From assembly GCA_002269645.1 (NCBI GenBank), contig NIVC01003645.1:1-55078 (forward strand): DNA of 55,078 nt. Direction: 5' to 3'. Source of the stretch: Macrostomum lignano (taxonomy: Eukaryota). Within the stretch, counting starts at the first letter, position 1. Each line of letters starts with the position of its first letter. Shown one piece after another: positions 10,926 to 55,078 of this stretch. A model generated the notes under the pieces. It was not told the origin of the DNA. It did no database searches and saw only the letters and a list, made by a program, of their open reading frames with translations. Made by a program: the position numbers and the translations under genes.

Positions 10926-10997
10926 CAGAGATGAGAGATTCAGGATCACGAAGAGCCAAAGCATGACTCGGTGGTGAGTTGGGTAACTCTGGAATCC

Positions 10998-14769: not shown

Positions 14770-14840
<71 letters not shown>

Positions 14841-25111: not shown

Positions 25112-28100
25112 CTATCGGTGGTCGCGGTACATCTTTGTGAACGTTTCGCCAAATAATCGACGCAACTCGTTGCGCATAGCCTTGAACGTTGGCGTCAGGA
25201 GGCCGTTCTCAACGCTAAACGGCTCGTGGTGCAGGTGTATGTCCCGCACCTGCAAGTGACAGGATGGTAAGCGATATAGCCTCATACTAGCTGCTGAATG
25301 CATTCTAAAACCTACATGTAAATTGGCGTTGGAATGGATTGAAGTTGGAATTGGTTGTAAAGGGCCTTAGCGAGACACATGTAGTACATTTCGATTCGAT
25401 ATATCACTGAGCCTCCATTACCGCATATGATTAGCCTTTACACAAAACCAATTGCGCAGTAAAACTTTACATACGATGTCGCCGTACCTGCTCGAAAGAC
25501 TTGAGATCATTAGCCTTCCCCGTGGCTTGCATACTCTGCAGGATCTCCGTTTTTAGTTCCAAATCGTTGCACAGGTCTTTCAAATTTTCCGGTTTGCGCC
25601 GCTTCTTTGCCCAAGCCATCACAGCCTCCGGGTTGGGCACAACCGCGGCCAGAATGAAATTCTCCAGGCTGTCTCCGTGCACGAACACCTGATACACGTA
25701 GACGTTGGTGCTGTAAATCTGTTCAATCTTTTCTGGAGCAACGTACTCGCCCTGGGACAACTTGAAAATGTGCTTCTTTCGGTCGATAATCTTTAGAAAA
25801 CCGTCGCTAGTCCATTGACCAATGTCACCCGTGTGCATCCAGCCGTCGGAGTCCATGATCTTGGCCGTCTCCGCTTCCATTTGGAAGTAGCCAAGCGTGA
25901 CGTTCAAGCCTTTGATGCAGACTTCGCCCGAGCCGTCTTTAGCGTAGTAGCCCATTTCCGGGACGTCCTGCAGCTGGACGACGTTGTTGAACAACGGCAT
26001 GCCGACGTTGCCCGTCTGCGGGTTGCCTGGAAGCGTGACAGTGGAGCCACCTGTGGTCTCCGTCTGGCCGTAGCCTTCCACTACCGGACAGCCGAAGGCC
26101 GCCCTTGAGAAGCGCATCACCTTTTCGGCTAGAGGAGCGGAGCCCACAATGACCAGCCGGATGCGGTTGCCGGTGGAGGCCTGCTCAATGGGTTCAAAAT
26201 AAATTTGCTGCTTTTTTCTGGACTTTATGATCGTTTTGAAATTTAGAGCCCAAAATATAAATTATAAAGCTGATTTGAGACTTGCTGGAGGAACGCCTCA
26301 CATTACTGATGACCACTACCATAACCTGAATGGTCGATTTTTCACCGCGCTAATCGCGTCTTTCCACAATTTTTCATTGCCTTCCTTCCTAAAACTGCCT
26401 TGTACATTTTCACTGCACAGTGGTGTACGCAGAGGGGCACAGGTGTCATTAGTACGTGTACGTCAACAAAATTCGCCTAAGTGGTCTATCTACTAGTTAC
26501 AGTACGCGATCATGAGTCATGACCAATGCATCAACGTTAATAACAGGGAGCTCTCACCTGAATCTTGCTAAACACCAGCGAGTCCCAGATGGAATTCTTC
26601 CGAATGACTCGCCGATTAACTTCATTAGTTTTGCGTCTAAGCGCCATGCGGAAGATGGCAGCCCCAAGACAGTTGGAGTTCGCCTGGGCCAAGGTCTTGT
26701 CGTAAATCCGATTCAGCAGCCGAGGCACCGTGCAGAAAATGGTCGGCTTGAGCTCCTTCATGTCGTCGACTAGAGTGAGAATGTCGCCACGGTAGAATCC
26801 GATTCTCATGCCATGCATGAAGCATAAAACGTGCATAATTCGCTCGAAGATGTGAGCCAGAGGCAGGTAGCTCAGGTAGACGTCATCGCAGCTGGCGGTG
26901 GACACGTACTGTGAAATTTCCGGGTTTGAAGCTGTCGACACCTTCTTCACGCTTAAATAGACTCAGCCAGATAAAATATTGTCGACAGTCAATCGAATCA
27001 ATTAACTGTCGGCAACCTCAAACTTTAGCAAACTTGTTCTCTCACCTGCTTGCCGTGAGTTATCAAAAGGTCCGTCATGGCCAGCGATTCGGCTATTAAA
27101 TTGCCGTGCGTAATTTGAACGCCCTTCGGGAGGCCTGGGTGCAAAAGCAGGGGGAAAATATTAAAGAATGTACGAGCTAAGAATGCGATTCTCCCCTTCA
27201 TACTGTCCTTGTCTGCTCACATCTGTCTAATTTCAACATTTTGTGCTTTTGCCATAATAAACCTTGACTGCTGCTTTCCCAAGCCTGTGGTTTCGGTTTT
27301 GCCGGTAGACTCCATTGACCTACAGCGTATTGGCTATTTCTGTCTTCGGAGGGGCATTATATAAAACTGGAGAACGCTACACCTGTTGAAATCAGTTTCT
27401 TAGTTTCCGAGGTCCGGGATTGCTCTCGTTTGTAGCAATTTTAGAAGGAAAATGATTTGTTGATTTCTGCATACGCGCCATGCATTCATCAGATACTTAA
27501 TGGAATAGGACTCGCGACAAAAAAACTACATGTAAGGCTTCAAAGACTGTCAAACAACTTGAAGAGACTTGATTTTAGATACGTTTGCCTCTGAGATTCA
27601 TTTTCCCTTGACGCACCGGTAGTTCCGCTGGTGTAGCACAGCAGAGCCAGGCTTTTCCTGTTGGGCTGCTGGCGCTGCTCGACTGGATTTTCCCGCCCTG
27701 CCTTCAGCGCCTCCTGCCAGCCCCAGGCCTGCTGCTTGATCTCGTTGACCTTTGGTATCCGGCCGCTCAGCTGAATGATGTGCAGGATCTGGGCGGAGTT
27801 CTTCAAGCGCAGCAGATTGGTCACGTGCTGGGGAGTCTCGCACAGGATGACACTAATGCGAGTCTGCATCAGAATGTGGTCCGTGGCCTCCGGGCCCAAG
27901 GTGTCGTACAGCGGCACTGGGGTGAGGCAGTACAGGTAGCAGCCGAGCTCCAGTATCACCCACTCGGCGCGGTTCTTGGTGTAAATTCCCACAAAACTTT
28001 CCGGCGGCAGTTTGAGAACGGCGGCCAGGAATGCACCGATGTTGAGCGCTTCGGTGAACACCTATAAGTTTTTTTCAAGTTATAAGTCTGTGTTATAAGT

Positions 28101-30117: not shown

Positions 30118-33100
30118 TTAGAAATAGTGCGTCTCCGGCTGCCACTGAGCACTTCCTCCATTATTGTTTGACCCAGCCGAGTCCTGGTGCAGGTAGCAGC
30201 TGGGATAGACCGATGCCCGTCTCTGTCGGTAGCTTCCAGCGCTGAGCTCCATCAAAACAGTCGAACGCCGGTTGGAGGATGCACCGCAGCCACGGGAACG
30301 GCATCCGCATCTTCTGGCGAACTGCTGACCCACAGCGAGCCGGATGTAGCTCAGCAGCAGGTCGAGAATCTCCAGCACTGTCAGCACGCTGACGCCGATC
30401 CACAGGCCGAGGTTTCCGCCAAGATCCGACAGAAGCTTCTCCATGGTGTAGGCCAGCTCCTCGACCTCCAGATCGGCCAGGTAGCTCTCGGCCAGGACGT
30501 CGATTTTCGTGACTCACTGCTCGAGCTCGCTCATCGGCAGACTCCGATTGTTGGCGAATTCATTGAGCACGGTGAATCTGTAGGAGTTTGATGGAGTCTG
30601 AGTCAGTGTGCTCAGCGGCTACTCTTGTTAGATAATGAAGACGAAGCGAAGGAAAAGGAGAGACTGAGAAAGACGGCGATGAAAAGAAGAGTAGATGGTG
30701 AATGAAGGTAAAACTTAAGGTAAATTTAAGCGTCGAATATTCCAGTCAGTTCATAAAACCAAATGAAGTTGAATGTGTGAACTATACTAGCAGGCTTTAG
30801 CGGAGAAGGTGCAAAGAAGGTGCTTTATTTAAGCAAATTGCTTGACAGAAGATACTTTGAAATACCGTTAAGTAGTTCGACTCCTTACTGGAGGAAATAA
30901 GTAGAAACGCACCTGCCAGTCAGATTGGCCTGGTCGAACATGATGTTCAGCCGGGACATCAGAACCGGATAGGCAGCCGCGGTGGGCCACTTGGCCATGG
31001 ACACCACATTGGTGTAGGACTGCCTGACGCACGGATGCGCGCAGCTGTTCAGAGCCTCAGTGGTTGCGGCCGCTTCCGGACTGTTGAAGTAGCGATCGTG
31101 ACAGAGGCTCCTATCGATCAGGCGGTCGACCGCCTAGGAGCGAAGTGTGGTGACATTCGATAGATCGCGATGCCTACCACCGGGCATGATGGCATCCTCC
31201 TTGAGCAGGGTATGATAATAATTGACTACACCTGCCCCAATTGGGTCAGATGTGCAACCGACAGCTCAGCCGCAGCTATTGCGCGGTGCATCTGAAGGCT
31301 GCGTACGGCTGTTCAGTCCAAAGACTGGGAGAGGGGAGTCGCCACACACACCCTCAATTACCTCCAGCCAATGCTGGCACCCATTTTACAGGTGGGTGAA
31401 CTGAAGCAATGCAGAGTTAAGTGTCTTGCTCAAGGGCACAAATTGTTCCAGTGGGATTGGGAATCGAACCCCCGACCTTCAAGTCGAGAGTCCGACGCTC
31501 TAACCAGTAGGCTACAGCCCCCTCCCAAAAGTGCTCTCAAAAATTCCGCCGTATCTTGTTGGCGCGGGATAAAGACTTCTCTATTGATCAAGATTATTTG
31601 TCTGCTGTCCTGCTAGATATTGACCCAATATATTGGAAACTTTTTCTAATTGTTTCTGAATGAACTCTTCTATATGCTCATCTTTCTCGATCGTCCAGGG
31701 TATAGTTTTTCAAAATTTAGTACTCCGACTTATGAAACTGGAAGACACTTTAACTAATTTTTATTCGTACGAGCTACCTTTCGCCCTGTCTCATTCCAGC
31801 TCACGTAGTGCGTCGTAGCCAGGTATTTGAGCCATTCGGCTGACAGGTAGTGGCACTGGTCCCGCAGCTGGTACTGCTCAAACACCGGATAAGCGTACGA
31901 GATGCAGCCGCACTGCGAGTAGAGAAAAGTCTGATAGGAGCGCATCAGGCAGACCTCCTGGTCGTAGGCGAACTCCGTCAGCTGGCCGTTGGTCCTGTCC
32001 AGCACGCGCACCGAGCCCGCCGCCTGGTCCGTCTGGCACGGCTTGGCCGGGGTCGACAGGCTGCGGGTCTCCAGCATGCGCACGCTGAACTGGTAGGCCT
32101 TGGCCGAGGCCATGGTGACTCCCCGGAACTCCGGCACCGGGTAGGTCGTGTGCGGGTGGATGATGGTCTTGATGCCCTCAACTCGGTCCAGCCGCTCGCC
32201 ATCCGACCGGCCATCGGGCAGCAGCGTCGGGTTGCTCGCTACGGTTTCTGCATCGGCGGAGGAGCCGCTGTTCTCATTCTGCGTGAACAGCACCAGACGC
32301 ATTCCGTAGGAGAACAGGTCGATCTGTTTGGGGCAATCGAAATGTGATCGGAATTTTAACTGGCACCAACGGGGGGCGGAGTTCGCTAGTCCAATTACTA
32401 AATCAACAATCGCTTTATGATGCCTTTGTTTTGAAGGTCCTAAATATCGCTTAGGCTGACAATGAATAAGAAGCACTATATACAAGTACATAGAGTCTTG
32501 AAGCGACCCAACACGCATTGGTTCGGATTTCAAACTCAAAGTGGAACCGATCAAGCTTTTTTAAACAAAAAACCGTTAAAAAGCTTGACTGTCTTGAAAG
32601 CTACGAAACTTTAAAAGTTATTATTGGAGAGCGGCAACACCTGAAATTCTGTTACGCTTCCTAAACGGACTTCGGAAAGAAGTTGGAAGGATATATAGAT
32701 TTGCCTTCGCACAGTCCTGGGTGAGGTTTTGCCATAGACAAAACACGCACTTGCTTGATTTGGACTTGGGAAGTCCGTAAGGTGAGGCAATGGATAGTTA
32801 TAGATACAGTTTCAGAGGTAGATAATGATCAATTGTCACGAGTGGCGAAGCCCATTTAACCAAGTCCCCTGAGCAGGCACACAAGCGCGCAGATACGTAC
32901 GCAGTCATACGCACAGGCACACACTCACAGAAGTGTACAGGGCCGTTGTTTGTCGTTAGGCATGTACACTTCGCTGTGCCTTGGGGGTTGGCCCACAAAG
33001 GTATTAGTTGCACGAGCAGAGAGCCAAGCCGAGATTCCAATTTGGCCTCAAATTTATTTGACTGCACTCGGAATCGAGCCTGGGCCGCTGGCACATCAGA

Positions 33101-36100
33101 GCGCCGCGCGGGACCACGTGGGCTACGTCCCCCATTGTGTATTCATACTGAACTGCTGACGAACAACAAAGCTGAAAACTGATGAGTCTCCCCATCCCCA
33201 TGTCCACGGGAAAATTTGCACCATTTTTCTACTGGATTCGCTTCTGTCGCTTCTCTCAATTCTTTCGCTGTGAAACGTGTAGCAGCCGCGGTACTGGCTG
33301 CTGCTGTGCTGGGTGAACATACTGGCGTTGCACGGCACTCCATGAATCACGCAGTCCACCAGCATGTCCTCTAGCGGCAGGTAGAAATCCTTCTCGTTCG
33401 CGCTGCAGTACCTGCGCATTTTTTGAGGAGGTTTCGTTGTGCTGAGAAATCTGCTGTACATATAAAGTCCATTAATATCCAATAAAAGCCATGGAACTTC
33501 CACAACTAAGGGCTTATTGCAGCAAACGAACATTTTTGTTGAGAAAAGTAGCAGAAATACCAAATGTTGTTCCCTGATTTCTCCTACTCATACCTATTAT
33601 TTAGCCAATTTTCCTTTGAATTCGCTAGAAACCATTTTCGTGCAGGCAAGCAGAAGTTCTCTTTGAAGCCTTTGAATAGCGAACGACGCTTTTGAAATTT
33701 TTCATAAATCGAGAACAAACTGCTCGGTAAATCAGAGAAAGAAACTGAACTTGAAACAATTTTCGATGGAGAAAGTGGCAGAGAGGAGAGGCGGGAGAGG
33801 CAGAAATGAGAGGATAGAGAGGCACAAAGGGTGAGAGGCCTAGAGGAGAGGCAGATAAGCACACAGAGGAGAGGCAGATAATCACAGAGAGGAGAGGCAG
33901 ATAACCACACAGAGGAGAGGCAGATAAGCACACAGAGGAGAGGCAGATAAGCACACAGAGGAGAGGCAGATAATCACAGAGAGGAGAGGCAGATAACCAC
34001 ACAGAGGAGAGGCAGATAAGCACACAGAGGAGAGGCAGATAAGCACACAGAGGAGAGGCAGATAATCACAGAGAGGAGAGGCAGACAATCACAGAGAGGA
34101 GAGGCAGATAATCACAGAGAGGAGAGGCAGATAGTCACAGAGAGGAGAGGCAGATAATCACACAGAGGAGAGGTAGATAAGCAGAGAGAGGAGAGGCAGA
34201 TAAGCAGAGAGAGGAGAGGTAGATAAGCAGAGAGAGGAGAGGTAGATAAGCAGAGAGAGGAGAGGTAGATAAGCAGAGAGAGGAGAGGTAGATAATCACA
34301 GAGAGGAGAGGCAGATAACCACACAGAGGAGAGGCAGATAAGCACACAGAGGAGAGGCAGATAAGCACACAGAGGAGAGGCAGATAATCACAGAGAGGAG
34401 AGGCAGACAATCACAGAGAGGAGAGGCAGATAATCACAGAGAGGAGAGGCAGATAGTCACAGAGAGGAGAGGCAGATAATCACACAGAGGAGAGGTAGAT
34501 AAGCAGAGAGAGGAGAGGCAGATAAGCAGAGAGAGGAGAGGTAGATAAGCAGAGAGAGGAGAGGTAGATAAGCAGAGAGAGGAGAGGCAGATAAGCAGAG
34601 AGAGGAGAGGTAGATAAGCAGAGAGAGGAGAGGCAGATAAGCAGAGAGAGGAGAGGCAGATAAGCAGAGAGAGGAGAGGTATATAAGCAACAGATGAGAG
34701 GCAAATAAGCAGGGATAGAACGCCAATGATATTGCTAGGTGAAGGTGAAGGTGGCCTGTAGTGAGTTGCGTAGCAAGAGTACTTGTATGCCCCAGTCGCT
34801 AGAGCGGGGGTGGGGGTTGCTATTGTACAGCATGTACGTGCTTTCCACCCACCCCTGTCTCTGTCTTTTATACCCAGTTATGTAACAATGGTTGTATCGT
34901 ATTTAACCTGCGTATATCGATGGGATCGATCTAATAAACGCCAATAGGCTTCGTCAACTCTCAGTCGTATCTCTCTATCTTAGTCTACACCTCTATCTTA
35001 GTCTTTGGCAAGCGCTGCACGCCAAACGTGAGCAGTTTTCAGCCACGTGATGCCGAGAATTTCTCCCAAATAGCAACCATTTTTCGAAAACCTGAAGGCC
35101 GAATTCCTGCACAGGCTTTTTCCCCTAAAAACAAATCCCAAAGGGAATTAACATGTGTGCGGCTAACCTTATCAAAGCTCTTTAATCTGCTCAAATGTCA
35201 TGCAGTGATTCGAAGGATGTTGTTTAAGCGGCTTAGTCAAAAATCTGTGGGATTGATTCAATGCGCGAAGGCATTTTCATCGAGACTTATCCGAACAAAG
35301 CTTTGTCAACACTTTCCTCATTTCATTTCTGTAGCAAAGCAAGCCCTTGTCTCGAATCCCCATCCGAAACTCGAATCCCCATCCGAAACTCTAATCCCAA
35401 TCCGAAACTCGAATCCCAATCCGAAACTCGAATCCCAATCCGAAACTCGAATCCCAATCCGAAACTCGAATCCCAATCCGAAACTCGAATCCCAATCCGA
35501 AACTCGAATCCCAATCCGAAACTCGAATCCCAATCCGAAACTCGAATCCCAATCCGAAACTCGAATCCAAATCCGAAACTCGAATCCCAATCCGAAACTC
35601 GAATCCCAATCCGAAACTCGAATCCCAATCCGAAACTCGAATCCAAATCCGAACTCGAATCCCAATCCGAAACTCGAATCCCAATCCGAAACTCGAATCC
35701 CAATCCGAAACTCGAATCCCAATCCGAAACTCGAATCCCAATCCGAAACTCGAATCCAAATCCGAACTCGAATCCCAATCCGAAACTCGAATTCCCAATC
35801 CGAAACTCGAATCCTGAACTCAAATGTCCAACTCGAACCCCTGCCCATCTCACCGTATCCGGGACACCAGCTTGAACAGGTCTGGCACTCGGTTCTCGTT
35901 CTCCATCTGCAGGTTCTCAAGGTTGGCCTCCAAAGCCAGCAGCTGTTTGCTCTTCTCCAGCTCTGGCCGCTCCAAGAAGTTGCCGGCCACGCAGAACGTC
36001 AGATCGGGAAAGTGGAAGGCCACCGACTGAGACAGGCGCTTCACGGACACCGGGTACTGCTTGTACTGATCAAGCAGGATGCTGAACTGCACCAGGAAGC

Positions 36101-39100
36101 CCAGGATGCAGGCCACGGTCAGCAGAGACCAGCAGAGCCGGGCGTTCACCGTGCGGGCGCCGGCAGCGCGCCTGACACCGTGCATGGTGGTGGTGTCGGA
36201 GAATTCGCCAAACAGGCGGCAGGCTCGACTGCAGGGTGTCGACGGAGGTTCGACCGTTGGCAACATGCCGGAGGCGAGCTGTTCGAGGCTTGGAGTTTCT
36301 ACTTGGATAGCAGCTATGATAGTCGGTCACAATTTGAGCACGGTTTGAGCACAGTTTGGTAACGGTTTGAGCACAGTTTGGTCACGGTTTGAGCACAGTT
36401 TGGTCACGGTTTAAGCACAGTTTGGTCACGGTTTGAGCACAGTTTGGTCACGGTTTGAGCTCAGTTTGGTCACGGTTTGAGCACAGTTTGGTCACGGTTT
36501 GAGCACAGTTTGGCCACGGTTTAAGCACAGTTTGGTCACGGTTTGAGCACAGTTTGGTCACGGTTTAAGCACAGTTTGGTCACGGTTTAAGCACAGTTTG
36601 GTCACGGTTTGAGCACAGTTTGGTCACGGTTTGAGCACAGTTTGGTCACGGTTTGAGCACAGTTTGGTCACGTCTTGTTCACGGTTCGAGCAGGCTGTTA
36701 GAGCACTGTTTGAGCGAGGACTCAGTGAGGTTTGATCACAAACAAGAAACTTCGACAAAGCCCTCATTAGGTCCTTAACCCAACCGAACTTTACATTTGC
36801 ATGCCGCAAATTGCTAGGCCAGGTGGTTCGAGCGGCAATAGCTATTCGAATCTGATCGACTTTCAAGTGCCAATTGTTGCCAAGGCTGTCAAGAGGGCGT
36901 GGAAACACAGCTGACTAACGACTTCCGAGCCCCGCCCTCGACAGAATTTGATAGACGAGTTGCATTGATCTGGCGGGAATTTTCCACCGTTGGCTGTCTG
37001 AATTATTCCATTCGATTCTAGAATATTCTAAACTGGAGCTGCTCGATCCAGGCCAGGCATACCCTGATACGAATGCAGTTATACGCGTATCATTTTATAA
37101 AATCGATTGCGAATTCAAACTGTTCGAAAGTTGTCTAAAAAATCTGGGCTGTTGGCATTTTGTCAAACTGTAAGCAAACTGGCTGCCCTGCAGTCCCATA
37201 CTGCGCGAGTTGTGATTGGCTGGGGCTGCGCGGCTTACGCGTATTCTCCACCCCAGCTGCGCCCCACCCCATACAGAGGCTAATCTTTTAGCAGCCATAC
37301 GAAACGGGTTACAACCCCAAAGGGGATTGTAGCCTAGGGGTTAGAGCCTCGAACTCACGACTTTAAGGTCGGGGGTTCGACTCCCGATCCCACTGGAAAA
37401 AATTTGTGTCCTTGAGCAAGACACACGTGCATCGCCACCTCCAGGAAAAAATCTTTAGTGAGGAATGCCCATTCTGCCTCTCCGGTGTCGAGAATGCGGA
37501 GCACTTTATCTGTGAATGCCCCGCCTTTACTCAGGACAGGCTCACCCTACCTCGACCCAAACCCGGACCCTTCCGACGTTTTCAGGCCCGAGAATCTCTG
37601 CCAGCTCGTCCGCTACCTAAGGGCTACCGGGCGAGCGAACATCCACCTCCTGGATTCTCCGGAGGGGGACCGCGCTGGGGACACCGGCACCACCGGATCT
37701 CCCTGCGCGATACCGCAGCACCAGCTGCCCGTGGTCGCCAGGGGTTAGCGGAATGTCGGCAACGCCTCTGCTGCATCCGGATGCACGGAGCCCCCTGCAG
37801 CTGAGCCAAGTAAGTCAAGAACGTGTGGCGACCCCAAGTCCTTGGACTGAACAGCCGTACGCAGCCTTCAGATGCGCCGCGCAATAGCTGCGGCTGAGCT
37901 GTCGGTTGCTCATCTGGCCCATTTGGGGCAGGTGTAATTAATTATAATAATTATTATTGCGGAACGGGGCACTGTGCTGGCAGGTCTCTCAGACCCCATC
38001 CTAAGCTGCACGTTCCTTACGGAAGTGTAAATACCATATAAGCTGCATGTAGAAGTACTGCGGTCCGAGGCCCCACCTGACCGCCAGAAGGTGGCGCTGT
38101 TCCAAGCGGTGGTCGAGACCGTTCTGCTGTACAACGCTGAGACCCGGATGCTGACGGACTCGCTCGATCAGCAAGGAGACGCGGCTCACGCTGGCCTGCT
38201 GTGGGCGACTGCAGCTAGCAGGCCACATCATCCGCGCCGAGTCGCACTGCGCACAGCTGATGTAGGAGATGCTGCTGCTGACGCTGCAGGCTGCCTACCG
38301 CGGTGTGGACAAGCGTCTACTCGGCGTTTCGTCGAATGCCTGCTGGCTGACGCCAGCGCCGGCCGATTCGGTCGGCAGCGCGGCTTTCATTCACAACCTG
38401 GCCCAGAGCGGCGCCATGTGACGTTGCTTTTTTAAGACCCTGGCGGTGTGTACGCTCGTATTTTGTTGTTGTTGACCTTTCAGTAAATACGAATTTCCCA
38501 GCTGAGTTTATGCTTGTGGGATGTAAAATTAGGCAATTTGCAGAGTAGACTACTACTGGTAAGTAAGCGCCAAAAGATATAGCAGTCAAATTTACCAAGT
38601 TGGCAATAATCGAGAATGACGCAGAAGAACCGCTTTTTAGCAATATAAAAACAAGACTGCAGAGACAGTAACTTTAAACTGTAATAGGGCATGTGTATTT
38701 ATTTTAATAATTTAGACAAGTTCCACATGAATTTACTGGTTGATTCTTGAAATATTACATGGCTGCTCAAGTGTGCATTGTTGATAGCAGTCTTAATCTG
38801 TCTTAGTAAGGGCTGCTGGGCTATTGAATATTGTTCAGTTTCAGAGAATAAAGTTGAAATTTATGACAAAAACAGAAAAAATACGAAAAAAATCTGTTTG
38901 TTTATGCCAGCAGGTGGTCACAGTTTTTACAGTCACGGTTGGATCTACTTGTCGTGACCCTTCCCGTGCCCGTGCCCGTTACCGTGACCGTGACCGTGAC
39001 CTGCAATGCGTAAAGGTAGGACAAAATATCAACGCCAACGTATGGGAGAAATCAACGAATGTGTTGCGGGATCACTCACCGCGGCCGCCGCCGCCGCCGC

Positions 39101-39894: not shown

Positions 39895-40660
39895 ACTACT
39901 ACACTACTACACTGCTACACTACTACATTAATACACTACTACACTACTACGCTACTACACTACTACACTACTACACTACTACACTACTATATTAATGCAC
40001 TACTACACTACTACGCTATTACACTACTACACTACTACACTGCTACACTACTACACTACTACACTGCTACACTACTACATTAATGCACTACTACACTACT
40101 ACACTACTACACTACTACACTACTACACTACTACACTACTACACTACTACACTACTACACTACTACACTACTACACTACTACACTGCTACACTACTACAT
40201 TACTACACTACTACAACTACTACACTACTACACTACTACACTACTACACTACTACACTACTACATTACTACATTAATGCACTACTACACTACTACACTAC
40301 TACACTACTACACTACTACACTACTACATTACTACATTAATGCACTACTACACTACAACACTACTACACTACTACAACTACTACACTACTACACTACACC
40401 ACTACACTACTATACTACTACACTACTACACTACTACACTGCTACATTAATGCACTACTACACTACTACACTACTACACTACTACACTACTACACTACTA
40501 CACTACTACAATACTACACTGCTACACTACTACATTAATGCACTACTACACTACTACACTACTACACTACTACACTACTACAATACTACACTACTACACT
40601 ACTACACTACTACACTACTACACTACTACACTACTACACTACTACACTACTGCACTACTA
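39895..40660. repeat. 8-bp satellite (CTACTACA)n
   Basis: Direct reading; occasional CATTAATG interruptions. Confidence 0.96.
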
Positions 40661-40908
40661 AACTGTAAATCAAAGTTGAAGTCTACTTGACAACTTGCCC
40701 AGTCCGTCAATAGTGTGTGACGGGTGGACTGGGTGTGAACAGTGCATCACCCGACCCCCGCTGCGATAAACAAGACCCCACCCCACTGCGTCTGCTCAGA
40801 ATGCATTCAACATCTGCTCCAGCCAATGGCAGCTCCGGAACGGCCTCTCGTACTCAGCTGAGGATTAGAGAGTTGGGGGGGGGGTGAGTCGCGTGACGGC
40901 TTCACTCC

Positions 40909-43408: not shown

Positions 43409-43568
43409 GTTGTCTCTAACAACCCGTAACCATGGCGATTTATGCTATATGAATATAGCATTCTGTTCTATATATTGAGTGGCTCTTTCGAGCGCCTCAC
43501 GCCTCACTACGAGCTATTTGTCTGTTTGGCGGAAAATTGCGCAGATTTACTTGGTTGCCAATGACAAC
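43409..43568 (-). promoter_or_regulatory. Cluster of X-box-like motifs upstream of the small MGC gene
   Basis: GTTGCCAATGACAAC (43554-43568), GTAACCATGGCGAT (43426-43439) and GTTGTCTCTAACAAC (43409-43423); all are imperfect matches. Confidence 0.4.
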
Positions 43569-45568
43569 AACAGAGTCGCTGTCGCTGGGTTAAAGCTACA
43601 AATTTAGGCAAAGATATTTGGATAAAAGTTAGTCCGCAGATTGAGACTAGACTCTTATCTTCTAGCCTAGCAATGTCCCTGTCACTTGAGCTTAGCTCAA
43701 AAATGACAAGTTTGTGTGCTTTGTGTGTCTGTCCGACTCAACATTTTGAGAGCTTGTGTGTGTGTGTGTGTGTGTTTGTGCATTAGGCATTTCTTGGGAC
43801 AAGCGTGTATAAACTGACCCGTGCTATTAGGACCAAAAATGTGTTGGGCCAGGCCCAATAAGTGCGTCCCGACACTTCCAAAAATGAATTCTATTGAAAT
43901 GAAAAAATATTCATTGGAACCGTCTTTCGATTCTCCTTTCAAAAATCAATGTCATTTTTTCATATTTTTAATCAAACACGGGGAATCTAATGATTTGCAG
44001 TGTCCTAAGAAGTTTAAAAAATTATGCGAACTGATGGTCTGATCCAACAGAACAATTGGGTCTCAAATCGGAATTCTCGTTTTATTACAATATTTCTTAC
44101 AATATCAAGAAAGTCTACTACAAGTAACAGATAGAGGTTCTCCACAGGGCTGCCAATCGACACTTGAAAGGATCCTGACATTTGGCATCGTGTTTACTAT
44201 AAAATATGAAATAATTTAATAAAGATTTAGAATATTACAATCAAGCATACAAACCTTATAGATTTAGTATATTTAGATTTTTGCATAGAAACAGCTAGCA
44301 TCTAAATTCATTAGCTTCCAATTTCACTTATACACGAAACATGGCAAATTAAGGTTACATCCGCCTGTGCCCTCGGCCATTTTAACTGAAATTCTCGTTT
44401 TCAGTCAGCTGCATTAATCTATTTGTCATATGTGAATGGGCATTAACTGACTCAAGTTAGTGACTGGAGGCCATTAACGTAAAGTGACACTTTGAGTGAG
44501 GTAGTTTTCCGGTGGAAATTCTCACAGTCTTATGAAGCGCTTTTAGAGCAAAGAAATAAAGGGCAAAGAAAAACTTTGCATTTCCCGAGAAAACCGAGGA
44601 CGAGTATTAGAGGGAAACGTTTAATCTCTAAGGCTTTAAATGACTTCCTTATTGGCCTGGGTTTGGGCAGCTATACTATGTAGAAAAATTTTTCCTAGAA
44701 TTATGATAATTATCGTCTGGTATACTGAAATGTACTGAGATACCAAGAAACTTAAGATGACTGCATGGACTGCTAGCACATGTTTGCGTGTCACTGTCAC
44801 TGTAAAGTCGAAATCGATGACTAGTTTGGCCCAAAACTAACTACTAGGCCTTCCTGGAAAACAATTCTGCTTATCTTGGATCGTAAAGATAAACCCACGT
44901 ACAGTGCAGAAGTGTTAGGACAAGCGTGTACAAGACCCAGGCAATCCCTTACCCAGGCCACGCGTACATTCCTATCGCGGCGGGGGGAAGCGGGGAGGAG
45001 AGGCGGGCGCAAGGGAGTCGGGATAAAGTTTACACTGAAGTTGAGGCCTACAAGAGGAAGAGCCAATTCTAACGGAAAGGTACATGTAGAAGTTCCCTTT
45101 GACAAACGGCGTACTGGCGGTACTGCATATGTTCAAGCGAATATAATTCATTTACGAGACCTGCACTACACAGACAAAATGTGCCACGTCACAAGAGTTT
45201 CCATGCATGACCTGGCATGAAAAGACTTGGCTAGGAACCATTACACATATGTAAGTAGAATTTAAAATTCTTTTTAAAATTTTATGATTAAATAAAAACT
45301 TAACTGGAATTTACATATGTACTTTTCTAAAATTCCAGATACGTTGATATCGATAAGCTACCGTTTTCTTCTATAACAAACAGATTTGCCTTCATTGTCA
45401 AGTAAGTCTTGTCTCGTACTCGTATATGTCGTATTTTTTGTACGTTGAAAAAAATAATAAGCAGCCTAGTAATACTCTGAGCTCAGTGAAATATAAGAGA
45501 GGCGGCACGATCACCTTATTTATCAATTAATTTACAACAGCCAATCATCCTGCATCCTGCATTTACAA

Positions 45569-48500
45569 CGCTGCATCCGTCATTTGGTTCACTTGCTGCT
45601 CACAAGCCGCAGCAGCAGCAGCCGCTATCCGTGCAGGCAGTCAGTCTCTTTGTGAATTTTCTGGTGGATCTGAAGAAAACCCGTCCGGCACAGGATTAAA
45701 GAGAAAGAGACGATCTGTTTTGGGTGAGTATTATCTGCTGTAGAAGTATTGTACACCAGAGTACTTGTGTTACTTGGTAGAGCACAATTCAAAAGCAATG
45801 CATCAATCTCAGTGGCATTGTTGGGACACAAGCTACAAACGCATTGAATAGTAAACACAGCCCAGCCTAGCTCAAGGCTAGTAATTTGTTGGGCATTTAT
45901 TGGGACATTGCAGCCAGGCCTATTTTTTGAACAGCATTTGTTGGGTCGCACTTATTGGGACAATACTGATTCTAATCGCGACTACTTCTGAGTTCTGACT
46001 TTTCAAAACAGACCCAGCATTAGTTGAACACGTTCTATTAAAGGGTTCCTTTATAGCCTATTAATGATTACTAAAGGCAAGCCTATCTTAATTGATTTCT
46101 TTTCCTCGCAGATTCTGAAGTCAGCCACGCCAGCGACATGCCTAAGAGACAAGAATGCGCTTTAACGATCAGCAGCGAGCATTCTGATCTCGCCGCTGCA
46201 TCCGTCATTTGGTTCACTTGCTGCTCACAAGCCGCAGCAGCAGCAGCCGCTATCCGTGCAGGCAGTCAGTCTATTTGTGAATTTTCTGGTGGATCTGAAG
46301 AAAACCCGTCCGGCACAGGATTAAAGAGAAAGAGACGATCTGTTTTGGGTGAGTATTATCTGCTGTAGAAGTATTGTACACCAGAGTACTTGTGTTACTT
46401 GGTAGAGCACAATTGAAAAGCAATGCAACAATCTCAGTGGCATTGTTGGGACACAAGCTACAAACGCATTGAATAGTAAACACAGCCCAGCCTAGCTCAA
46501 GGCTAGTAATTTGTTGGGCATTTATTGGGACATTGCAGCCAGGCCTATTTTTTGAACAGCATTTGTTGGGTCGCACTTATTGGGACAATACTGATTCTAA
46601 TCGCGACTACTTCTGAGTTCTGACTTTTCAAAACAGACCCAGCATTAGTTGAACACGTTCTATTAAAGGGTTCCTTTATAGCCTATTAATGATTACTAAA
46701 GGCAAGCCTATCTTAATTGATTTCTTTTCCTCGCAGATTCTGAAGTCAGCCACGCCAGCGACATGCCTAAGAGACAAGAATGCGCTTTAACGATCAGCAG
46801 CGAGCATTCTGATCTCGCCGCTGCATCCGTCATTTGGTTCACTTGCTGCTCACAAGCCGCAGCAGCAGCAGCCGCTATCCGTGCAGGCAGTCAGTCTATT
46901 TGTGAATTTTCTGGTGGATCTGAAGAAAACCCGTCCGGCACAGGATTAAAGAGAAAGAGACGATCTGTTTTGGGTGAGTATTATCTGCTGTAGAAGTATT
47001 GTACACCAGAGTACTTGTGTTACTTGGTAGAGCACAATTGAAAAGCAATGCAACAATCTCAGTGGCATTGTTGGGACACAAGCTACAAACGCATTGAATA
47101 GTAAACACAGCCCAGCCTAGCTCAAGGCTAGTAATTTGTTGGGCATTTATTGGGACATTGCAGCCAGGCCTATTTTTTGAACAGCATTTGTTGGGTCGCA
47201 CTTATTGGGACAATACTGATTCTAATCGCGACTACTTCTGAGTTCTGACTTTTCAAAACAGACCCAGCATTAGTTGAACACGTTCTATTAAAGGGTTCCT
47301 TTATAGCCTATTAATGATTACTAAAGGCAAGCCTATCTTAATTGATTTCTTTTCCTCGCAGATTCTGAAGTCAGCCACGCCAGCGACATGCCTAAGAGAC
47401 AAGAATGCGCTTTAACGATCAGCAGCGAGCATTCTGATCTCGCCGCTGCATACGTCATTTGGTTCACTTGCTGCTCACAAGCCGCAGCAGCAGCAGCCGC
47501 TATCCGTGCAGGCAGTCAGTCTATTTGTGAATTTTCTGGTGGATCTGAAGAAAACCCGTCCGGCACAGGATTAAAGAGAAAGAGACGATCTGTTTTGGGT
47601 GAGTATTATCTGCTGTAGAAGTATTGTACACCAGAGTACTTGTGTTACTTGGTAGAGCACAATTGAAAAGCAATGCAACAATCTCAGTGGCATTGTTGGG
47701 ACACAAGCTACAAACGCATTGAATAGTAAACACAGCCCAGCCTAGCTCAAGGCTAGTAATTTGTTGGGCATTTATTGGGACATTGCAGCCAGGCCTATTT
47801 TTTGAACAGCATTTGTTGGGTCGCACTTATTGGGACAATACTGATTCTAATCGCGACTACTTCTGAGTTCTGACTTTTCAAAACAGACCCAGCATTAGTT
47901 GAACACGTTCTATTAAAGGGTTCCTTTATAGCCTATTAATGATTACTAAAGGCAAGCCTATCTTAATTGATTTCTTTTCCTCGCAGATTCTGAAGTCAGC
48001 CACGCCAGCGACATGCCTAAGAGACAAGAATGCGCTTTAACGATCAGCAGCGAGCATTCTGATCTCGCCGCTGCATCCGTCATTTGGTTCACTTGCTGCT
48101 CACAAGCCGCAGCAGCAGCAGCCGCTATCCGTGCAGGCAGTCAGTCTATTTGTGAATTTTCTGGTGGATCTGAAGAAAACCCGTCCGGCACAGGATTAAA
48201 GAGAAAGAGACGATCTGTTTTGGGTGAGTATTATCTGCTGTAGAAGTATTGTACACCAGAGTACTTGTGTTACTTGGTAGAGCACAATTGAAAAGCAATG
48301 CAACAATCTCAGTGGCATTGTTGGGACACAAGCTACAAACGCATTGAATAGTAAACACAGCCCAGCCTAGCTCAAGGCTAGTAATTTGTTGGGCATTTAT
48401 TGGGACATTGCAGCCAGGCCTATTTTTTGAACAGCATTTGTTGGGTCGCACTTATTGGGACAATACTGATTCTAATCGCGACTACTTCTGAGTTCTGACT

Positions 48501-51234
48501 TTTCAAAACAGACCCAGCATTAGTTGAACACGTTCTATTAAAGGGTTCCTTTATAGCCTATTAATGATTACTAAAGGCAAGCCTATCTTAATTGATTTCT
48601 TTTCCTCGCAGATTCTGAAGTCAGCCACGCCAGCGACATGCCTAAGAGACAAGAATGCGCTTTAACGATCAGCAGCGAGCATTCTGATCTCGCCGCTGCA
48701 TCCGTCATTTGGTTCACTTGCTGCTCACAAGCCGCAGCAGCAGCAGCCGCTATCCGTGCAGGCAGTCAGTCTATTTGTGAATTTTCTGGTGGATCTGAAG
48801 AAAACCCGTCCGGCACAGGATTAAAGAGAAAGAGACGATCTGTTTTGGGTGAGTATTATCTGCTGTAGAAGTATTGTACACCAGAGTACTTGTGTTACTT
48901 GGTAGAGCACAATTGAAAAGCAATGCAACAATCTCAGTGGCATTGTTGGGACACAAGCTACAAACGCATTGAATAGTAAACACAGCCCAGCCTAGCTCAA
49001 GGCTAGTAATTTGTTGGGCATTTATTGGGACATTGCAGCCAGGCCTATTTTTTGAACAGCATTTGTTGGGTCGCACTTATTGGGACAATACTGATTCTAA
49101 TCGCGACTACTTCTGAGTTCTGACTTTTCAAAACAGACCCAGCATTAGTTGAACACGTTCTATTAAAGGGTTCCTTTATAGCCTATTAATGATTACTAAA
49201 GGCAAGCCTATCTTAATTGATTTCTTTTCCTCGCAGATTCTGAAGTCAGCCACGCCAGCGACATGCCTAAGAGACAAGAATGCGCTTTAACGATCAGCAG
49301 CGAGCATTCTGATCTCGCCGCTGCATCCGTCATTTGGTTCACTTGCTGCTCACAAGCCGCAGCAGCAGCAGCCGCTATCCGTGCAGGCAGTCAGTCTATT
49401 TGTGAATTTTCTGGTGGATCTGAAGAAAACCCGTCCGGCACAGGATTAAAGAGAAAGAGACGATCTGTTTTGGGTGAGTATTATCTGCTGTAGAAGTATT
49501 GTACACCAGAGTACTTGTGTTACTTGGTAGAGCACAATTGAAAAGCAATGCAACAATCTCAGTGGCATTGTTGGGACACAAGCTACAAACGCATTGAATA
49601 GTAAACACAGCCCAGCCTAGCTCAAGGCTAGTAATTTGTTGGGCATTTATTGGGACATTGCAGCCAGGCCTATTTTTTGAACAGCATTTGTTGGGTCGCA
49701 CTTATTGGGACAATACTGATTCTAATCGCGACTACTTCTGAGTTCTGACTTTTCAAAACAGACCCAGCATTAGTTGAACACGTTCTATTAAAGGGTTCCT
49801 TTATAGCCTATTAATGATTACTAAAGGCAAGCCTATCTTAATTGATTTCTTTTCCTCGCAGATTCTGAAGTCAGCCACGCCAGCGACATGCCTAAGAGAC
49901 AAGAATGCGCTTTAACGATCAGCAGCGAGCATTCTGATCTCGCCGCTGCATCCGTCATTTGGTTCACTTGCTGCTCACAAGCCGCAGCAGCAGCAGCCGC
50001 TATCCGTGCAGGCAGTCAGTCTATTTGTGAATTTTCTGGTGGATCTGAAGAAAACCCGTCCGGCACAGGATTAAAGAGAAAGAGACGATCTGTTTTGGGT
50101 GAGTATTATCTGCTGTAGAAGTATTGTACACCAGAGTACTTGTGTTACTTGGTAGAGCACAATTGAAAAGCAATGCAACAATCTCAGTGGCATTGTTGGG
50201 ACACAAGCTACAAACGCATTGAATAGTAAACACAGCCCAGCCTAGCTCAAGGCTAGTAATTTGTTGGGCATTTATTGGGACATTGCAGCCAGGCCTATTT
50301 TTTGAACAGCATTTGTTGGGTCGCACTTATTGGGACAATACTGATTCTAATCGCGACTACTTCTGAGTTCTGACTTTTCAAAACAGACCCAGCATTAGTT
50401 GAACACGTTCTATTAAAGGGTTCCTTTATAGCCTATTAATGATTACTAAAGGCAAGCCTATCTTAATTGATTTTTTTTTTTCTCGCAGATTCTGAAGTCA
50501 GCCACGCCAGCGACATGCCTAAGAGACAAGAATGCGCTTTAACGATCAGCAGCGAGCATTCTGATCTCGCCGCTGCATCCGTCATTTGGTTCACTTGCTG
50601 CTCACAAGCCGCAGCAGCAGCAGCCGCTATCCGTGCAGGCAGTCAGTCTATTTGTGAATTTTCTGGTGGATCTGAAGAAAACCCGTCCGGCACAGGATTA
50701 AAGAGAAAGAGACGATCTGTTTTGGGTGAGTATTATCTGCTGTAGAAGTATTGTACACCAGAGTACTTGTGTTACTTGGTAGAGCACAATTCAAAAGCAA
50801 TGCAACAATCTCAGTGGCATTGTTGGGACACAAGCTACAAACGCATTGAATAGTAAACACAGCCCAGCCTAGCTCAAGGCTAGTAATTTGTTGGGCATTT
50901 ATTGGGACATTGCAGCCAGGCCTATTTTTTGAACAGCATTTGTTGGGTCGCACTTATTGGGACAATACTGATTCTAATCGCGACTACTTCTGAGTTCTGA
51001 CTTTTCAAAACAGACCCAGCATTAGTTGAACACGTTCTATTAAAGGGTTCCTTTATAGCCTATTAATGATTACTAAAGCAAGCCTATCTTAATTGATTTC
51101 TTTTCCTCGCAGATTCTGAAGTCAGCCACGCCAGCGACATGCCTAAGAGACAAGAATGCGCTTTAACGATCAGCAGCGAGCATTCTGATCTCGCCGCTGC
51201 ATCCGTCATTTGGTTCACTTGCTGCTCACAAGCC

Positions 51235-51300
<66 letters not shown>

Positions 51301-53775
51301 GCTATCCGTGCAGGCAGTCAGTCTATTTGTGAATTTTCTGGTGGATCTGAAGAAAACCCGTCCGGCACAGGATTAAAGAGAAAGAGACGATCTGTTTTGG
51401 GTGAGTATTATCTGCTGTAGAAGTATTGTACACCAGAGTACTTGTGTTACTTGGTAGAGCACAATTCAAAAGCAATGCAACAATCTCAGTGGCATTGTTG
51501 GGACACAAGCTACAAACGCATTGAATAGTAAACACAGCCCAGCCTAGCTCAAGGCTAGTAATTTGTTGGGCATTTATTGGGACATTGCAGCCAGGCCTAT
51601 TTTTTGAACAGCATTTGTTGGGTCGCACTTATTGGGACAATACTGATTCTAATCGCGACTACTTCTGAGTTCTGACTTTTCAAAACAGACCCAGCATTAG
51701 TTGAACACGTTCTATTAAAGGGTTCCTTTATAGCCTATTAATGATTACTAAAGCAAGCCTATCTTAATTGATTTCTTTTCCTCGCAGATTCTGAAGTCAG
51801 CCACGCCAGCGACATGCCTAAGAGACAAGAATGCGCTTTAACGATCAGCAGCGAGCATTCTGATCTCGCCGCTGCATCCGTCATTTGGTTCACTTGCTGC
51901 TCACAAGCCGCAGCAGCAGCAGCCGCTATCCGTGCAGGCAGTCAGTCTATTTGTGAATTTTCTGGTGGATCTGAAGAAAACCCGTCCGGCACAGGATTAA
52001 AGAGAAAGAGACGATCTGTTTTGGGTGAGTATTATCTGCTGTAGAAGTATTGTACACCAGAGTACTTGTGTTACTTGGTAGAGCACAATTCAAAAGCAAT
52101 GCAACAATCTCAGTGGCATTGTTGGGACACAAGCTACAAACGCATTGAATAGTAAACACAGCCCAGCCTAGCTCAAGGCTAGTAATTTGTTGGGCATTTA
52201 TTGGGACATTGCAGCCAGGCCTATTTTTTGAACAGCATTTGTTGGGTCGCACTTATTGGGACAATACTGATTCTAATCGCGACTACTTCTGAGTTCTGAC
52301 TTTTCAAAACAGACCCAGCATTAGTTGAACACGTTCTATTAAAGGGTTCCTTTATAGCCTATTAATGATTACTAAAGGCAAGCCTATCTTAATTGATTTC
52401 TTTTCCTCGCAGATTCTGAAGTCAGCCACGCCAGCGACATGCCTAAGAGACAAGAATGCGCTTTAACGATCAGCAGCGAGCATTCTGATCTCGCCGCTGC
52501 ATCCGTCATTTGGTTCACTTGCTGCTCACAAGCCGCAGCAGCAGCAGCCGCTATCCGTGCAGGCAGTCAGTCTCTTTGTGAATTTTCTGGTGGATCTGAA
52601 GAAAACCCGTCCGGCACAGGATTAAAGAGAAAGAGACGATCTGTTTTGGGTGAGTATTATCTGCTGTAGAAGTATTGTACACCAGAGTACTTGTGTTACT
52701 TGGTAGAGCACAATTCAAAAGCAATGCAACAATCTCAGTGGCATTGTTGGGACACAAGCTACAAACGCATTGAATAGTAAACACAGCCCAGCCTAGCTCA
52801 AGGCTAGTAATTTGTTGGGCATTTATTGGGACATTGCAGCCAGGCCTATTTTTTGAACAGCATTTGTTGGGTCGCACTTATTGGGACAATACTGATTCTA
52901 ATCGCGACTACTTCTGAGTTCTGACTTTTCAAAACAGACCCAGCATTAGTTGAACACGTTCTATTAAAGGGTTCCTTTATAGCCTATTAATGATTACTAA
53001 AGCAAGCCTATCTTAATTGATTTCTTTTCCTCGCAGATTCTGAAGTCAGCCACGCCAGCGACATGCCTAAGAGACAAGAATGCGCTTTAACGATCAGCAG
53101 CGAGCATTCTGATCTCGCCGCTGCATCCGTCATTTGGTTCACTTGCTGCTCACAAGCCGCAGCAGCAGCAGCCGCTATCCGTGCAGGCAGTCAGTCTCTT
53201 TGTGAATTTTCTGGTGGATCTGAAGAAAACCCGTCCGGCACAGGATTAAAGAGAAAGAGACGATCTGTTTTGGGTGAGTATTATCTGCTGTAGAAGTATT
53301 GTACACCAGAGTACTTGTGTTACTTGGTAGAGCACAATTCAAAAGCAATGCAACAATCTCAGTGGCATTGTTGGGACACAAGCTACAAACGCATTGAATA
53401 GTAAACACAGCCCAGCCTAGCTCAAGGCTAGTAATTTGTTGGGCATTTATTGGGACATTGCAGCCAGGCCTATTTTTTGAACAGCATTTGTTGGGTCGCA
53501 CTTATTGGGACAATACTGATTCTAATCGCGACTACTTCTGAGTTCTGACTTTTCAAAACAGACCCAGCATTAGTTGAACACGTTCTATTAAAGGGTTCCT
53601 TTATAGCCTATTAATGATTACTAAAGCAAGCCTATCTTAATTGATTTCTTTTCCTCGCAGATTCTGAAGTCAGCCACGCCAGCGACATGCCTAAGAGACA
53701 AGAATGCGCTTTAACGATCAGCAGCGAGCATTCTGATCTCGCCGCTGCATCCGTCATTTGGTTCACTTGCTGCTC

Positions 53776-53807
<32 letters not shown>

Positions 53808-55078
53808 TATATCCGTGGCAGGCAGTCAGTCTCTTTTGTGAATTTTCTGGTGGATCTGAAGAAAACCCGTCCGGCACAGGATTAAAGAGAAAGAGACGAT
53901 CTGTTTTGGGTGAGTATTATCTGCTGTAGAAGTATTGTACACCAGAGTACTTACTTGTGTTACTTGGTAGAGCACAATTCAAAAGCAATGCAACAATCTC
54001 AGTGGCATTGTTGGGACACAAGCTACAAACGCATTGAATAGTAAACACAGCCCAGCCTAGCTCAAGGCTAGTAATTTGTTGGGCATTTATTGGGACATTG
54101 CAGCCAGGCCTATTTTTTGAACAGCATTTGTTGGGTCGCACTTATTGGGACAATACTGATTCTAATCGCGACTACTTCTGAGTTCTGACTTTTCAAAACA
54201 GACCCAGCATTAGTTGAACACGTTCTATTAAAGGGTTCCTTTATAGCCTATTAATGATTACTAAAGCAAGCCTATCTTAATTGATTTCTTTTCCTCGCAG
54301 ATTCTGAAGTCAGCCACGCCAGCGACATGCCTAAGAGACAAGAATGCGCTTTAACGATCAGCAGCGAGCATTCTGATCTCGCCGCTGCATCCGTCATTTG
54401 GTTCACTTGCTGCTCACAAGCCGCAGCAGCAGCAGCCGCTATCCGTGCAGGCAGTCAGTCTCTTTGTGAATTTTCTGGTGGATCTGAAGAAAACCCGTCC
54501 GGCACAGGATTAAAGAGAAAGAGACGATCTGTTTTGGGTGAGTATTATCTGCTGTAGAAGTATTGTACACCAGAGTACTTGTGTTACTTGGTAGAGCACA
54601 ATTGAAAAGCAATGCAACAATCTCAGTGGCATTGTTGGGACACAAGCTACAAACGCATTGAATAGTAAACACAGCCCAGCCTAGCTCAAGGCTAGTAATT
54701 TGTTGGGCATTTATTGGGACATTGCAGCCAGGCCTATTTTTTGAACAGCATTTGTTGGGTCGCACTTATTGGGACAATACTGATTCTAATCGCGACTACT
54801 TCTGAGTTCTGACTTTTCAAAACAGACCCAGCATTAGTTGAACACGTTCTATTAAAGGGTTCCTTTATAGCCTATTAATGATTACTAAAGCAAGCCTATC
54901 TTAATTGATTTCTTTTCCTCGCAGATTCTGAAGTCAGCCACGCCAGCGACATGCCTAAGAGACAAGAATGCGCTTTAACGATCAGCAGCGAGCATTCTGA
55001 TCTCGCCGCTGCATCCGTCATTTGGTTCACTTGCTGCTCACAAGCCGCAGCAGCAGCAGCCGCTATCCGTGCAGGCAG
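45569..55078 (+). repeat. 625-bp tandem array (about 15 units, runs off the window end); each unit holds a 388-nt intron and a 237-nt exon-like segment
   Basis: The MPKRQ ORF recurs at 46138, 46763, 47388, 48013, 48638, 49263, 49888, ~50515, 51139, 51814, 52439, 53063, 53687 and 54327, with a partial copy near 54950. Each unit has the acceptor TTTCTTTTCCTCGCAG and the donor TTGG/GTGAGT. Confidence 0.98.
46112..46348 (+). CDS. Representative repeated phase-1 exon (79 codons: DSEVSHASDMPKRQ...AAAAAAA...KRKRRSVLG); product unknown
   Basis: 237 nt between a strong acceptor and GTGAGT. Only the phase-1 frame is open; the other two hit TGA or TAA early. Expression is not shown. Confidence 0.45.

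Follow-up and report, generated by a model that had tools for sequence, protein, structure and literature searches.

A spliced 625-bp exon-intron repeat inside a dispersed, transposon-like element of the flatworm Macrostomum lignano

Macrosatellites whose units carry exons are known from vertebrates: the kringle-IV type 2 (KIV-2) repeat of LPA has a unit of about 5.5 kb with two exons, and the NBPF genes are built from Olduvai exon doublets. Nematode polyprotein allergens and antigens of the ABA-1 type, like multi-copy neuropeptide precursors, are tandem-repeat polyproteins cut at tetrabasic sites. Satellites can also derive from the internal repeats of DNA transposons, as in the foldback/Tetris type of Drosophila and the satellites associated with miniature inverted-repeat transposable elements (MITEs) or Helitrons in bivalves. 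Where among these systems does a tandem array of the flatworm Macrostomum lignano belong? The array closes a 55,078-nt stretch of forward strand from contig NIVC01003645.1 (assembly GCA_002269645.1), here called the window, and consists of units of mostly 625 bp, each with one exon and one intron. We propose, with a probability of roughly 0.5, that it is a transcribed and spliced repeat, untranslated or decaying, of a dispersed, transposon-like element of which the window holds a 5′-damaged copy.

In form, the array resembles LPA KIV-2 and NBPF Olduvai: units stand head to tail, each contains whole exon(s) with an intron, the phase is symmetric, and there is homogenisation of the kind ascribed to unequal crossing-over. 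The vertebrate arrays, however, are single-locus, demonstrably translated and equipped with a normal first exon, whereas the M. lignano array has a 625-bp one-exon unit, sits in an element dispersed over 10 or more loci and lacks an in-frame start or signal peptide. With satellites born from transposons it shares fixed termini, unrelated flanks, a variable internal copy number and a terminus-related motif inside the repeat. It differs from these in that its unit is a spliced exon-intron module with an open reading frame (ORF), its terminal inverted repeat is weak, and neither a target-site duplication nor a transposase partner was identified.

What shows that the array belongs to an element, and not to a single local gene as the first-pass annotation of the window had it? 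Gene-model look-ups in the same assembly gave a comparison set of 14 loci on 10 contigs (loci are cited below by L numbers, database proteins by P numbers), and members of the family cluster lie on six further contigs. As far as the fetched stretches reach, every locus has the same layout of 5′ arm, array and 3′ arm. An intact copy, for example that at NIVC01000487 341102-349140, opens with a 2492-nt 5′ arm that carries several short non-coding leader exons. In every fetched locus the array begins at the same CGCTGCATCC, where the first exon enters the repeat. The terminal exon matches the repeat exon to about position 156, then runs on into ...IRAGSQLIDEFSGRAGYFLSF and an in-frame stop, with AATAAA about 80 nt later; the 3′ arm of intact copies has 988 nt and includes a 38-bp minisatellite. 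The part of the 5′ arm kept in the window (Table 1) is 96–98% identical to L001 4420-6192 and L002 6198-7959, and also matches the arm in L004, L008, L011 and L014. Within 1.2 kb of the arm there are five consensus GT[AG]AGT donors on the plus strand.

The ends of the element are common to the nucleotide, (TG)n-TTTGTGCATTAGGCATTTCTTGGGAC... on the left and ...GGCCAATAAGTGCCTCGTGCACGTTTG-(TG)n on the right. Upstream flanks are mutually unrelated in all six loci with a 5′ junction, and that junction falls at the same nucleotide, with a variable TG tract; the six loci with a 3′ junction give five downstream flanks that bear no relation to one another, since two of these loci form a haplotig pair. 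An imperfect inverted repeat is formed by GTGCATTAGGCATTTCTTGGGAC and the reverse complement of the 3′ end, GTGCACGAGGCACTTATTGGCC (17/24 matches by eye). The 14-nt motif GCAYTKNTTGGGAC occurs 47 times in the window against 0.31 expected, always inside the element, at the 5′ terminus and three times per intron; intact copies carry it also in the minisatellite of the 3′ arm and, inverted, at the 3′ terminus. Copies have landed in different contexts: a myosin heavy-chain gene surrounds L004, and L002 occupies an intron of a TIR-domain gene that runs on the opposite strand. With its multiple copies, its identical ends and its unrelated flanks, the element, which corresponds to the gene-model family Mlig029855, looks like a non-autonomous transposon on sequence grounds, and an intact copy would be a complete transcription unit with sharp, shared ends. 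Two repeats at its borders may be recorded here. The (TG)n tracts adjoin both ends in variable length (43755-43775 in the window, L001 12440-12457, and the 3′ junctions of L002, L004 and L005) and may stem from a preferred target, slippage at the termini or a trace of recombination; the minisatellite of the 3′ arm, at L001 11651-11840, has 4–5 copies of GCTATGCTGGAATTGTTGGGACAGCCCTATCCACACTG and carries the intron/terminus motif TTGTTGGGAC.

All loci agree in phase, in register and in the two edges of the array, so the array is older than the dispersal. The order of events would then be that the array arose first and its copies were dispersed later, after which the number of units drifted locus by locus through unequal crossing-over. 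Arrays at paralogous loci have 4, 7, 9, 10, 17 or 19+ units, and, as had been foreseen from the window alone, the number changes without a change of frame. Copy number has changed from locus to locus and central units are homogenised, the pattern expected of unequal crossing-over. Some loci are irregular: in L014 (11383-14934) a stretch of 3.5 kb with no match to the 3′ arm comes after an array of about 4.3 units, and in L010 (11150-11604) and L006 a stretch of about 450 bp splits the array into 14 and 3 units. These irregularities may be secondary insertions or rearrangements.

Within the window, anchor searches with CGCTGCAT find the repeat from 45569 to 55007 at a spacing of 624–675 bp, most often 625. 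Exons were delimited by cuts at CAG/ATTCTGAAG and TTTTGG/GTGAGT (a slash marks the boundary), and each array exon has the CAG acceptor and GTGAGT donor of a GT-AG intron. Twelve of the 14 complete exons measure 237 nt, one 288 nt and one 249 nt, all divisible by 3, and the introns between them 387–391 nt. The spliced repeat encodes DSEVSHASDMPKRQECALTISSEHSDLAAASVIWFTCCSQ(A)7IRAGSQSICEFSGGSEENPSGTGLKRKRRSVL, where the polyalanine length varies, (A)n. All 14 complete exons end in KRKRRSVL, and the residue at the exon-exon junction is D, from a codon split G/AT. Most of what the first-pass annotation had said of the array holds: anchor searches and translation bear out the lengths of exon (237 nt) and intron (388 nt), the phase of 1 on either side of the exon, the single open frame and the count of 14 complete exons, and the array does reach the end of the window, which cuts a fifteenth exon. 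Two details need correcting. The repeat peptide reads DSEVSH...RSVL and does not end in RSVLG, and the exons are not all identical: eight of the 14 are, three have I>L, one has S>Y, and two are the length variants. Over 46194-51194, seven of eight units are free of substitutions against the consensus. Shared variants are found at the two edges of the array, in its first unit and in several at its end. Identical units in the centre and shared variants at the edges are, to judge by the sequence, the pattern that homogenisation by unequal exchange produces. Exons have 51% G+C and introns 40%. Tandem Repeats Finder (TRF), run on the window, did not report the array because its longest period, 500, is below the unit length.

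Are the repeat exons really spliced? A protein search with two spliced units returned 30 matches, all named ones from M. lignano, and the family includes the GenBank models BOX15_Mlig029855 g10, g13, g14, g15 and g16 (names run from g10 to g16). The gene annotation was built from RNA sequencing reads (RNA-seq) aligned with STAR and assembled with StringTie and TACO, plus a de novo transcriptome; TransDecoder supplied the ORFs (PMC5730564). The junction predicted from the window, GTTTTGG/ATTCTGAAG (RSVL/DSEVSH), is present in these transcript-derived models, some of which read RSVL/ASEVSN. It occurs with 388-nt introns in the models P0007, P0031 and P0032-P0042; P0007 spans 111+388+246+388+64 = 1197 bp exactly. 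Many database models lie in the other two frames, and together they have six junction types, all explained by GT-AG pairs. Three donors (exon position 237, GTGAGT; 153, GTCAGT; 196, GTCCGG) and two acceptors (positions 1 and 65) are used, and splicing at consensus GT-AG sites turns read-through transcripts into exon chains. Two of the six combinations (237>1 and 153>1) keep the frame and four break it. Splicing of the repeat exons in RNA is thus supported, if indirectly, by RNA-seq-derived models; expression of the window copy itself is not proven by them, because multi-mapping reads were allowed.

A spliced chain of open exons suggests a protein, but how would its translation begin? In the window the first in-frame ATG lies inside the first complete repeat exon (Table 1), and none was found upstream of it after in silico splicing of the leader exons, which are closed in all frames. 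Upstream AUGs exist in other frames, one of them arising at the junction of the leader exon E0 (described below) with the first repeat exon in intact copies. The 5′ arm holds no ATG-initiated, signal-peptide-like ORF that ends at a phase-1 consensus donor. The sole ORF of the arm with a hydrophobic start (position 885) has no good donor, and in the window copy it is only 33 codons long; an in-frame N-terminal signal peptide, as expected of a polyprotein, was thus not found. The last three nucleotides of the M. lignano spliced leader are ATG (PMC8629364), and joining this ATG to the repeat exon gives frame 0, which meets a stop after 17 codons.

The frame is also poorly kept. Across 10 non-redundant loci, 85 of 119 exons are intact and 34 (29%) broken, and in the L003 array (2449-11863) 11 of the 16 units have TAG in place of TGG, which shows cleanly how concerted evolution can spread a nonsense codon through a repeat. 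Substitution events shared by at least two units amount to 0.052 per bp in exons vs 0.034 in introns, and exon events outside the microsatellite comprise about 10 nonsynonymous, 1 nonsense and 2 synonymous changes. Neither the repeat proteins nor the 114-aa arm ORF has a Pfam domain; matches to Bd3614_N and QIL1 were sub-threshold or repeat-inflated noise, with 0 significant stretches. AlphaFold2 models the repeat with a predicted local distance difference test (pLDDT) score of 43 and a predicted template modelling (pTM) score of 0.20, the only predicted helix lying over the hydrophobic/polyalanine stretch. Purifying selection or a foldable unit, which would speak for a polyprotein, was not detected at the low power that such young copies give. 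All in all, there is no good evidence for translation or for selective protection of the repeat frame, and a protein of 14 or more repeats, as first proposed, is unproven. It seems reasonable to assume that the exon is open and preserves the frame because the repeat is young and homogenised, possibly with an older repeat-protein gene as its source, and not because selection now holds it so. A long repeat protein would probably not be made from the RNA, and the element would behave as a transcribed selfish or neutral repeat.

Several observations weigh against this picture. The arrays of the window (14/14) and of L004 (7/7) are fully open, and in the sampled units of the window, L004 and L011 all changes of exon length are multiples of 3. 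The single-base indels at other loci could be consensus errors of PacBio sequencing. Tests of selection within the family have low power because the copies differ by only 2–4%. The terminal exon supplies an in-frame stop about 80 nt ahead of AATAAA. The transposon part has its own weak points: the terminal inverted repeat matches at only 17 of 24 positions, no target-site duplication is recognisable at the compared element junctions, and no autonomous or transposase partner and no empty site were seen among the loci compared.

A further objection comes from relatives. M. lignano has two diverged subfamilies, of which UniProt proteins are the only record; they are represented there by P0050 and by P0054/P0056/P0057 (A0A1I8HX90, A0A1I8HFW1, A0A1I8J6G4 and A0A1I8HBC5). 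The first has units of about 80 aa with about 50% identity to the window family; the second has 81-aa units that read ...NAKRKRRSAQ/ASEVESSAD..., with 31% identity over 120 aa (E 1e-8). P0050 and P0054 both keep the period, KRKRRS at the end of the exon and SEV at the start of the next. A frame kept in diverged subfamilies is hard to obtain without some constraint, with the caveat that a protein database shows only the relatives that bear an ORF. The central CAG/GCA tract encodes Gln in both subfamilies and Ala in the window family, and no P0050-type units are present in the fetched loci. P0056 looks like a chimeric gene model that continues into cadherin domains.

The chief alternative, then, is a functional, lineage-specific gene family in which the exon chain is translated into a tandem polyprotein from an internal AUG or an undetected 5′ exon. 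A furin- or prohormone-convertase-type cut at RKRR/S would release 4-Cys peptides of about 79 aa, or of 51 aa by way of the in-frame alternative donor, with unequal crossing-over as the means of tuning dosage and repeat number. The single open frame and symmetric phase of 14/14 window exons speak for it, as do the higher G+C of the exons, the transcript-based gene models, the alternative donor at position 153 that is likewise in frame, and a terminal exon with in-frame stop and poly(A) signal. The tetrabasic motif is moreover the best-conserved element across the three diverged subfamilies, at the same period. A convertase-type R-X-K/R-R site, RKRR/S, is present as a motif in every unit of the window. 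Its codons, AAGAGAAAGAGACGA, are, however, purine-rich and adjoin the donor, and the tract could be conserved as a splicing enhancer and not as codons. The leader exons with their upstream AUGs and lack of an in-frame ATG or signal peptide, the nonsense codon spread through L003 among the 29% of broken exons, the excess of nonsynonymous over synonymous changes without any constraint of exon over intron, and the frame-breaking isoforms common among database models all tell against translation. So does the absence of a confident fold, a domain and a credible homologue: a HMMER scan of 1.84 billion representatives gave none outside M. lignano. The sole match from another species, the C. remanei repeat protein P0055, is regarded as convergent and unrelated, and the names 'UCH', 'Rho-GAP' and 'Kazal-like' that UniProt gives to repeat-only fragments were not treated as evidence. 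On balance we lean against a functional gene family, while regarding it as possible.

A related proposal joins the two views, with the transposon-like element dispersing a 'peptide factory' whose spliced polyprotein is cut at RKRR/S into Cys-containing peptides of about 79 aa. The comparison here is with ABA-1-type polyproteins, whose units of about 80 aa are likewise parted by R-X-K/R-R. The M. lignano array differs from them in lacking a signal peptide, any sequence or domain similarity and a predicted fold; its units are parted by introns, and purifying selection is not detectable. We consider the peptide factory rather unlikely. If it were true, unequal crossing-over would set the dose of peptide, use of the in-frame alternative donor would add a second isoform, and the three diverged subfamilies would be a fast-evolving, species-restricted family of secreted peptides.

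Could the introns be the product? The array would then be a non-coding host gene with dispensable exons, a precursor of small RNAs or of intron-encoded small nucleolar RNA or microRNA. Tandem exon-intron modules, one long spliced RNA and non-coding leader exons recall the SNORD116/115 host genes, and the introns are as conserved as the exons. In M. lignano, however, no structured RNA was detected in the intron and the exons carry a continuous ORF. An intron-encoded small RNA is not supported because there is no Rfam match at E<=1 over 43500-47500 and the minimum free energy of the intron fold has a z-score of -0.19, which makes a host gene improbable.

The origin first suggested for the array was local: a duplication with breakpoints in two neighbouring exons, X and Y, would have created a Y/X fusion exon that was then amplified at the window locus. 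Anchor searches recover the marks on which this was built, namely an acceptor TTTACAACAG ending at 45540, a 183-nt segment X with donor GTGAGT and a repeat start at 45569. The unit boundary CGCTGCATCC does fall inside an exon, the first exon corresponds to the repeat exon in its 3′ part alone, and the last one has a unique tail. In L001 and L002, however, what begins at the acceptor TTTACAACAG is E0, an exon-like segment of 139 nt that has a GTGAGT donor and no frame free of stops; beyond it come an intron and the first repeat exon, whose own acceptor reads cacag/GTTCATCCGCATTCAAACTCGC-CGCTGCATCC... Aligned with these copies, the window has 28 nt where they have 722, a 694-bp deletion, and X is a chimera private to the window copy, and not an ancestral unique exon, because all 8 other copies that cover the region have it at full length. 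This deletion would have created X. Nor were X and Y different exons. The 22 nt that precede CGCTGCATCC in intact copies are similar to what the unit has ahead of its junction (GCATTCAAACTCGC vs GCATTCTGATCTCGC), and homology of the terminal exon with the repeat exon extends about 75–100 nt past the junction; X and Y were thus repeats of one another beforehand, and the first and last exons are edge copies of the same repeated exon. The register and edges of the array are also the same at 10 or more dispersed loci, so the array predates the window locus. A two-breakpoint origin in situ is not supported for these reasons, and we hold it to be very improbable. Still less credible is an assembler's expansion of one or two units, an idea to which the arrays of the window, L003, L006, L008 and L011, which run into contig or window ends, give some occasion, since complete arrays of 4, 7, 9, 10 and 17 units sit between both arms and unique flanks inside other long contigs and their units carry ordered, locus-specific variants.

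Table 1. Features of the window, with positions counted from its first nucleotide
Feature	Position	Strand	Remarks
Tandem array	45569..55078	+	15 full units (624-675 bp, modal 625) + 72 nt; cut by window end
Complete repeat exons (n=14)	46112..54537	+	Phase 1/1, open only in frame 2 (direct translation)
Complete exons 1-5	46112-46348, 46737-46973, 47362-47598, 47987-48223, 48612-48848	+	
Complete exons 6-10	49237-49473, 49862-50098, 50489-50725, 51113-51400, 51788-52024	+	
Complete exons 11-14	52413-52649, 53037-53273, 53661-53909, 54301-54537	+	
Fifteenth repeat exon, 154-nt partial	54925..55078	+	Truncated at window end
Representative 388-nt intron	46349..46736	+	GTGAGT...CTCGCAG; three copies of terminus-like motif GCAYTKNTTGGGAC
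(GCA)23 expansion inside one repeat exon	51231..51299	+	24 Ala; exon 288 nt
Variant exon, 249 nt	53661..53909	+	Four small indels, net +12; central 19 residues recoded (QQQQQQQQQQLYPWQAVSLF)
First in-frame ATG	46138	+	Inside first complete repeat exon
5′ arm of window copy	43755..45543	+	First 1773 nt of the 2492-nt intact arm
5′ terminus	43755..43800	+	(TG)n then TTTGTGCATTAGGCATTTCTTGGGAC; 14-nt motif GCAYTKNTTGGGAC, inverted copy 43852-43865
Leader exon-like segment Eb, 63 nt	45339..45401	+	Acceptor TTCCAG, donor GTAAGT; conserved in L001, L002
Further leader exon upstream of Eb	ends 45250	+	Donor GTAAGT
Exon X	45541..45723	+	Chimera: about 28 nt from leader exon E0 (45541-45568), then 3′ 155 nt of first repeat exon
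AMP-binding (acyl-CoA synthetase-like) gene	25467-28061	-	
Amiloride-sensitive sodium channel (ASC) gene	31754-36266	-	
MFS_2 transporter gene	12524-14749	-	
WD40-repeat gene	2795-3256	+	
Reverse-transcriptase (RVT_1) ORF	22669-23721	-	Non-long-terminal-repeat-type retroelement
Degenerate stretch	37406-38435	+	Residues related to the RVT_1 ORF

The remainder of the window is itself rich in repeats. Minisatellites are very abundant over 1-43700, where TRF reports 74 rows, about 30 separate arrays, with periods of 8–145 bp and lengths of 0.2–1.3 kb; examples lie at 2116-2975, 5545-6155, 8686-9289, 9627-10928, 11366-12509, 12957-14013, 14772-15469, 18406-19415, 33842-34711 and 39895-40664. Many of them separate the exons of ordinary genes and produce, in several frames, long ORFs that are spurious. 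The AMP-binding, ASC, MFS_2 and WD40 host genes adjoin the element, each split by repeat-filled introns.

A literature search on the gene name and on tandem repeats and satellites of M. lignano found no paper describing the Mlig029855 element family. In the reading preferred here, the array is the internal macrosatellite of one 5′-damaged copy of a multi-copy element dispersed in M. lignano. What would this mean for the biology of the worm? The unit of a satellite can be a complete exon-intron module, treated as such by the spliceosome, and an array of such units can be copied around the genome on a discrete element. This explains a family of fragmentary models called 'hypothetical protein', among them Mlig029855 and many UniProt entries, that occupy all three frames in the annotation of the very repeat-rich M. 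lignano genome, and it serves as a warning that models of the Mlig029855 type may not be proteins. If the repeat is translated after all, the array would be a rare invertebrate counterpart of genes with exonic variable-number tandem repeats such as LPA, and a tractable system, in a flatworm that can be made transgenic, for the co-evolution of repeat number, splicing and peptide dose.

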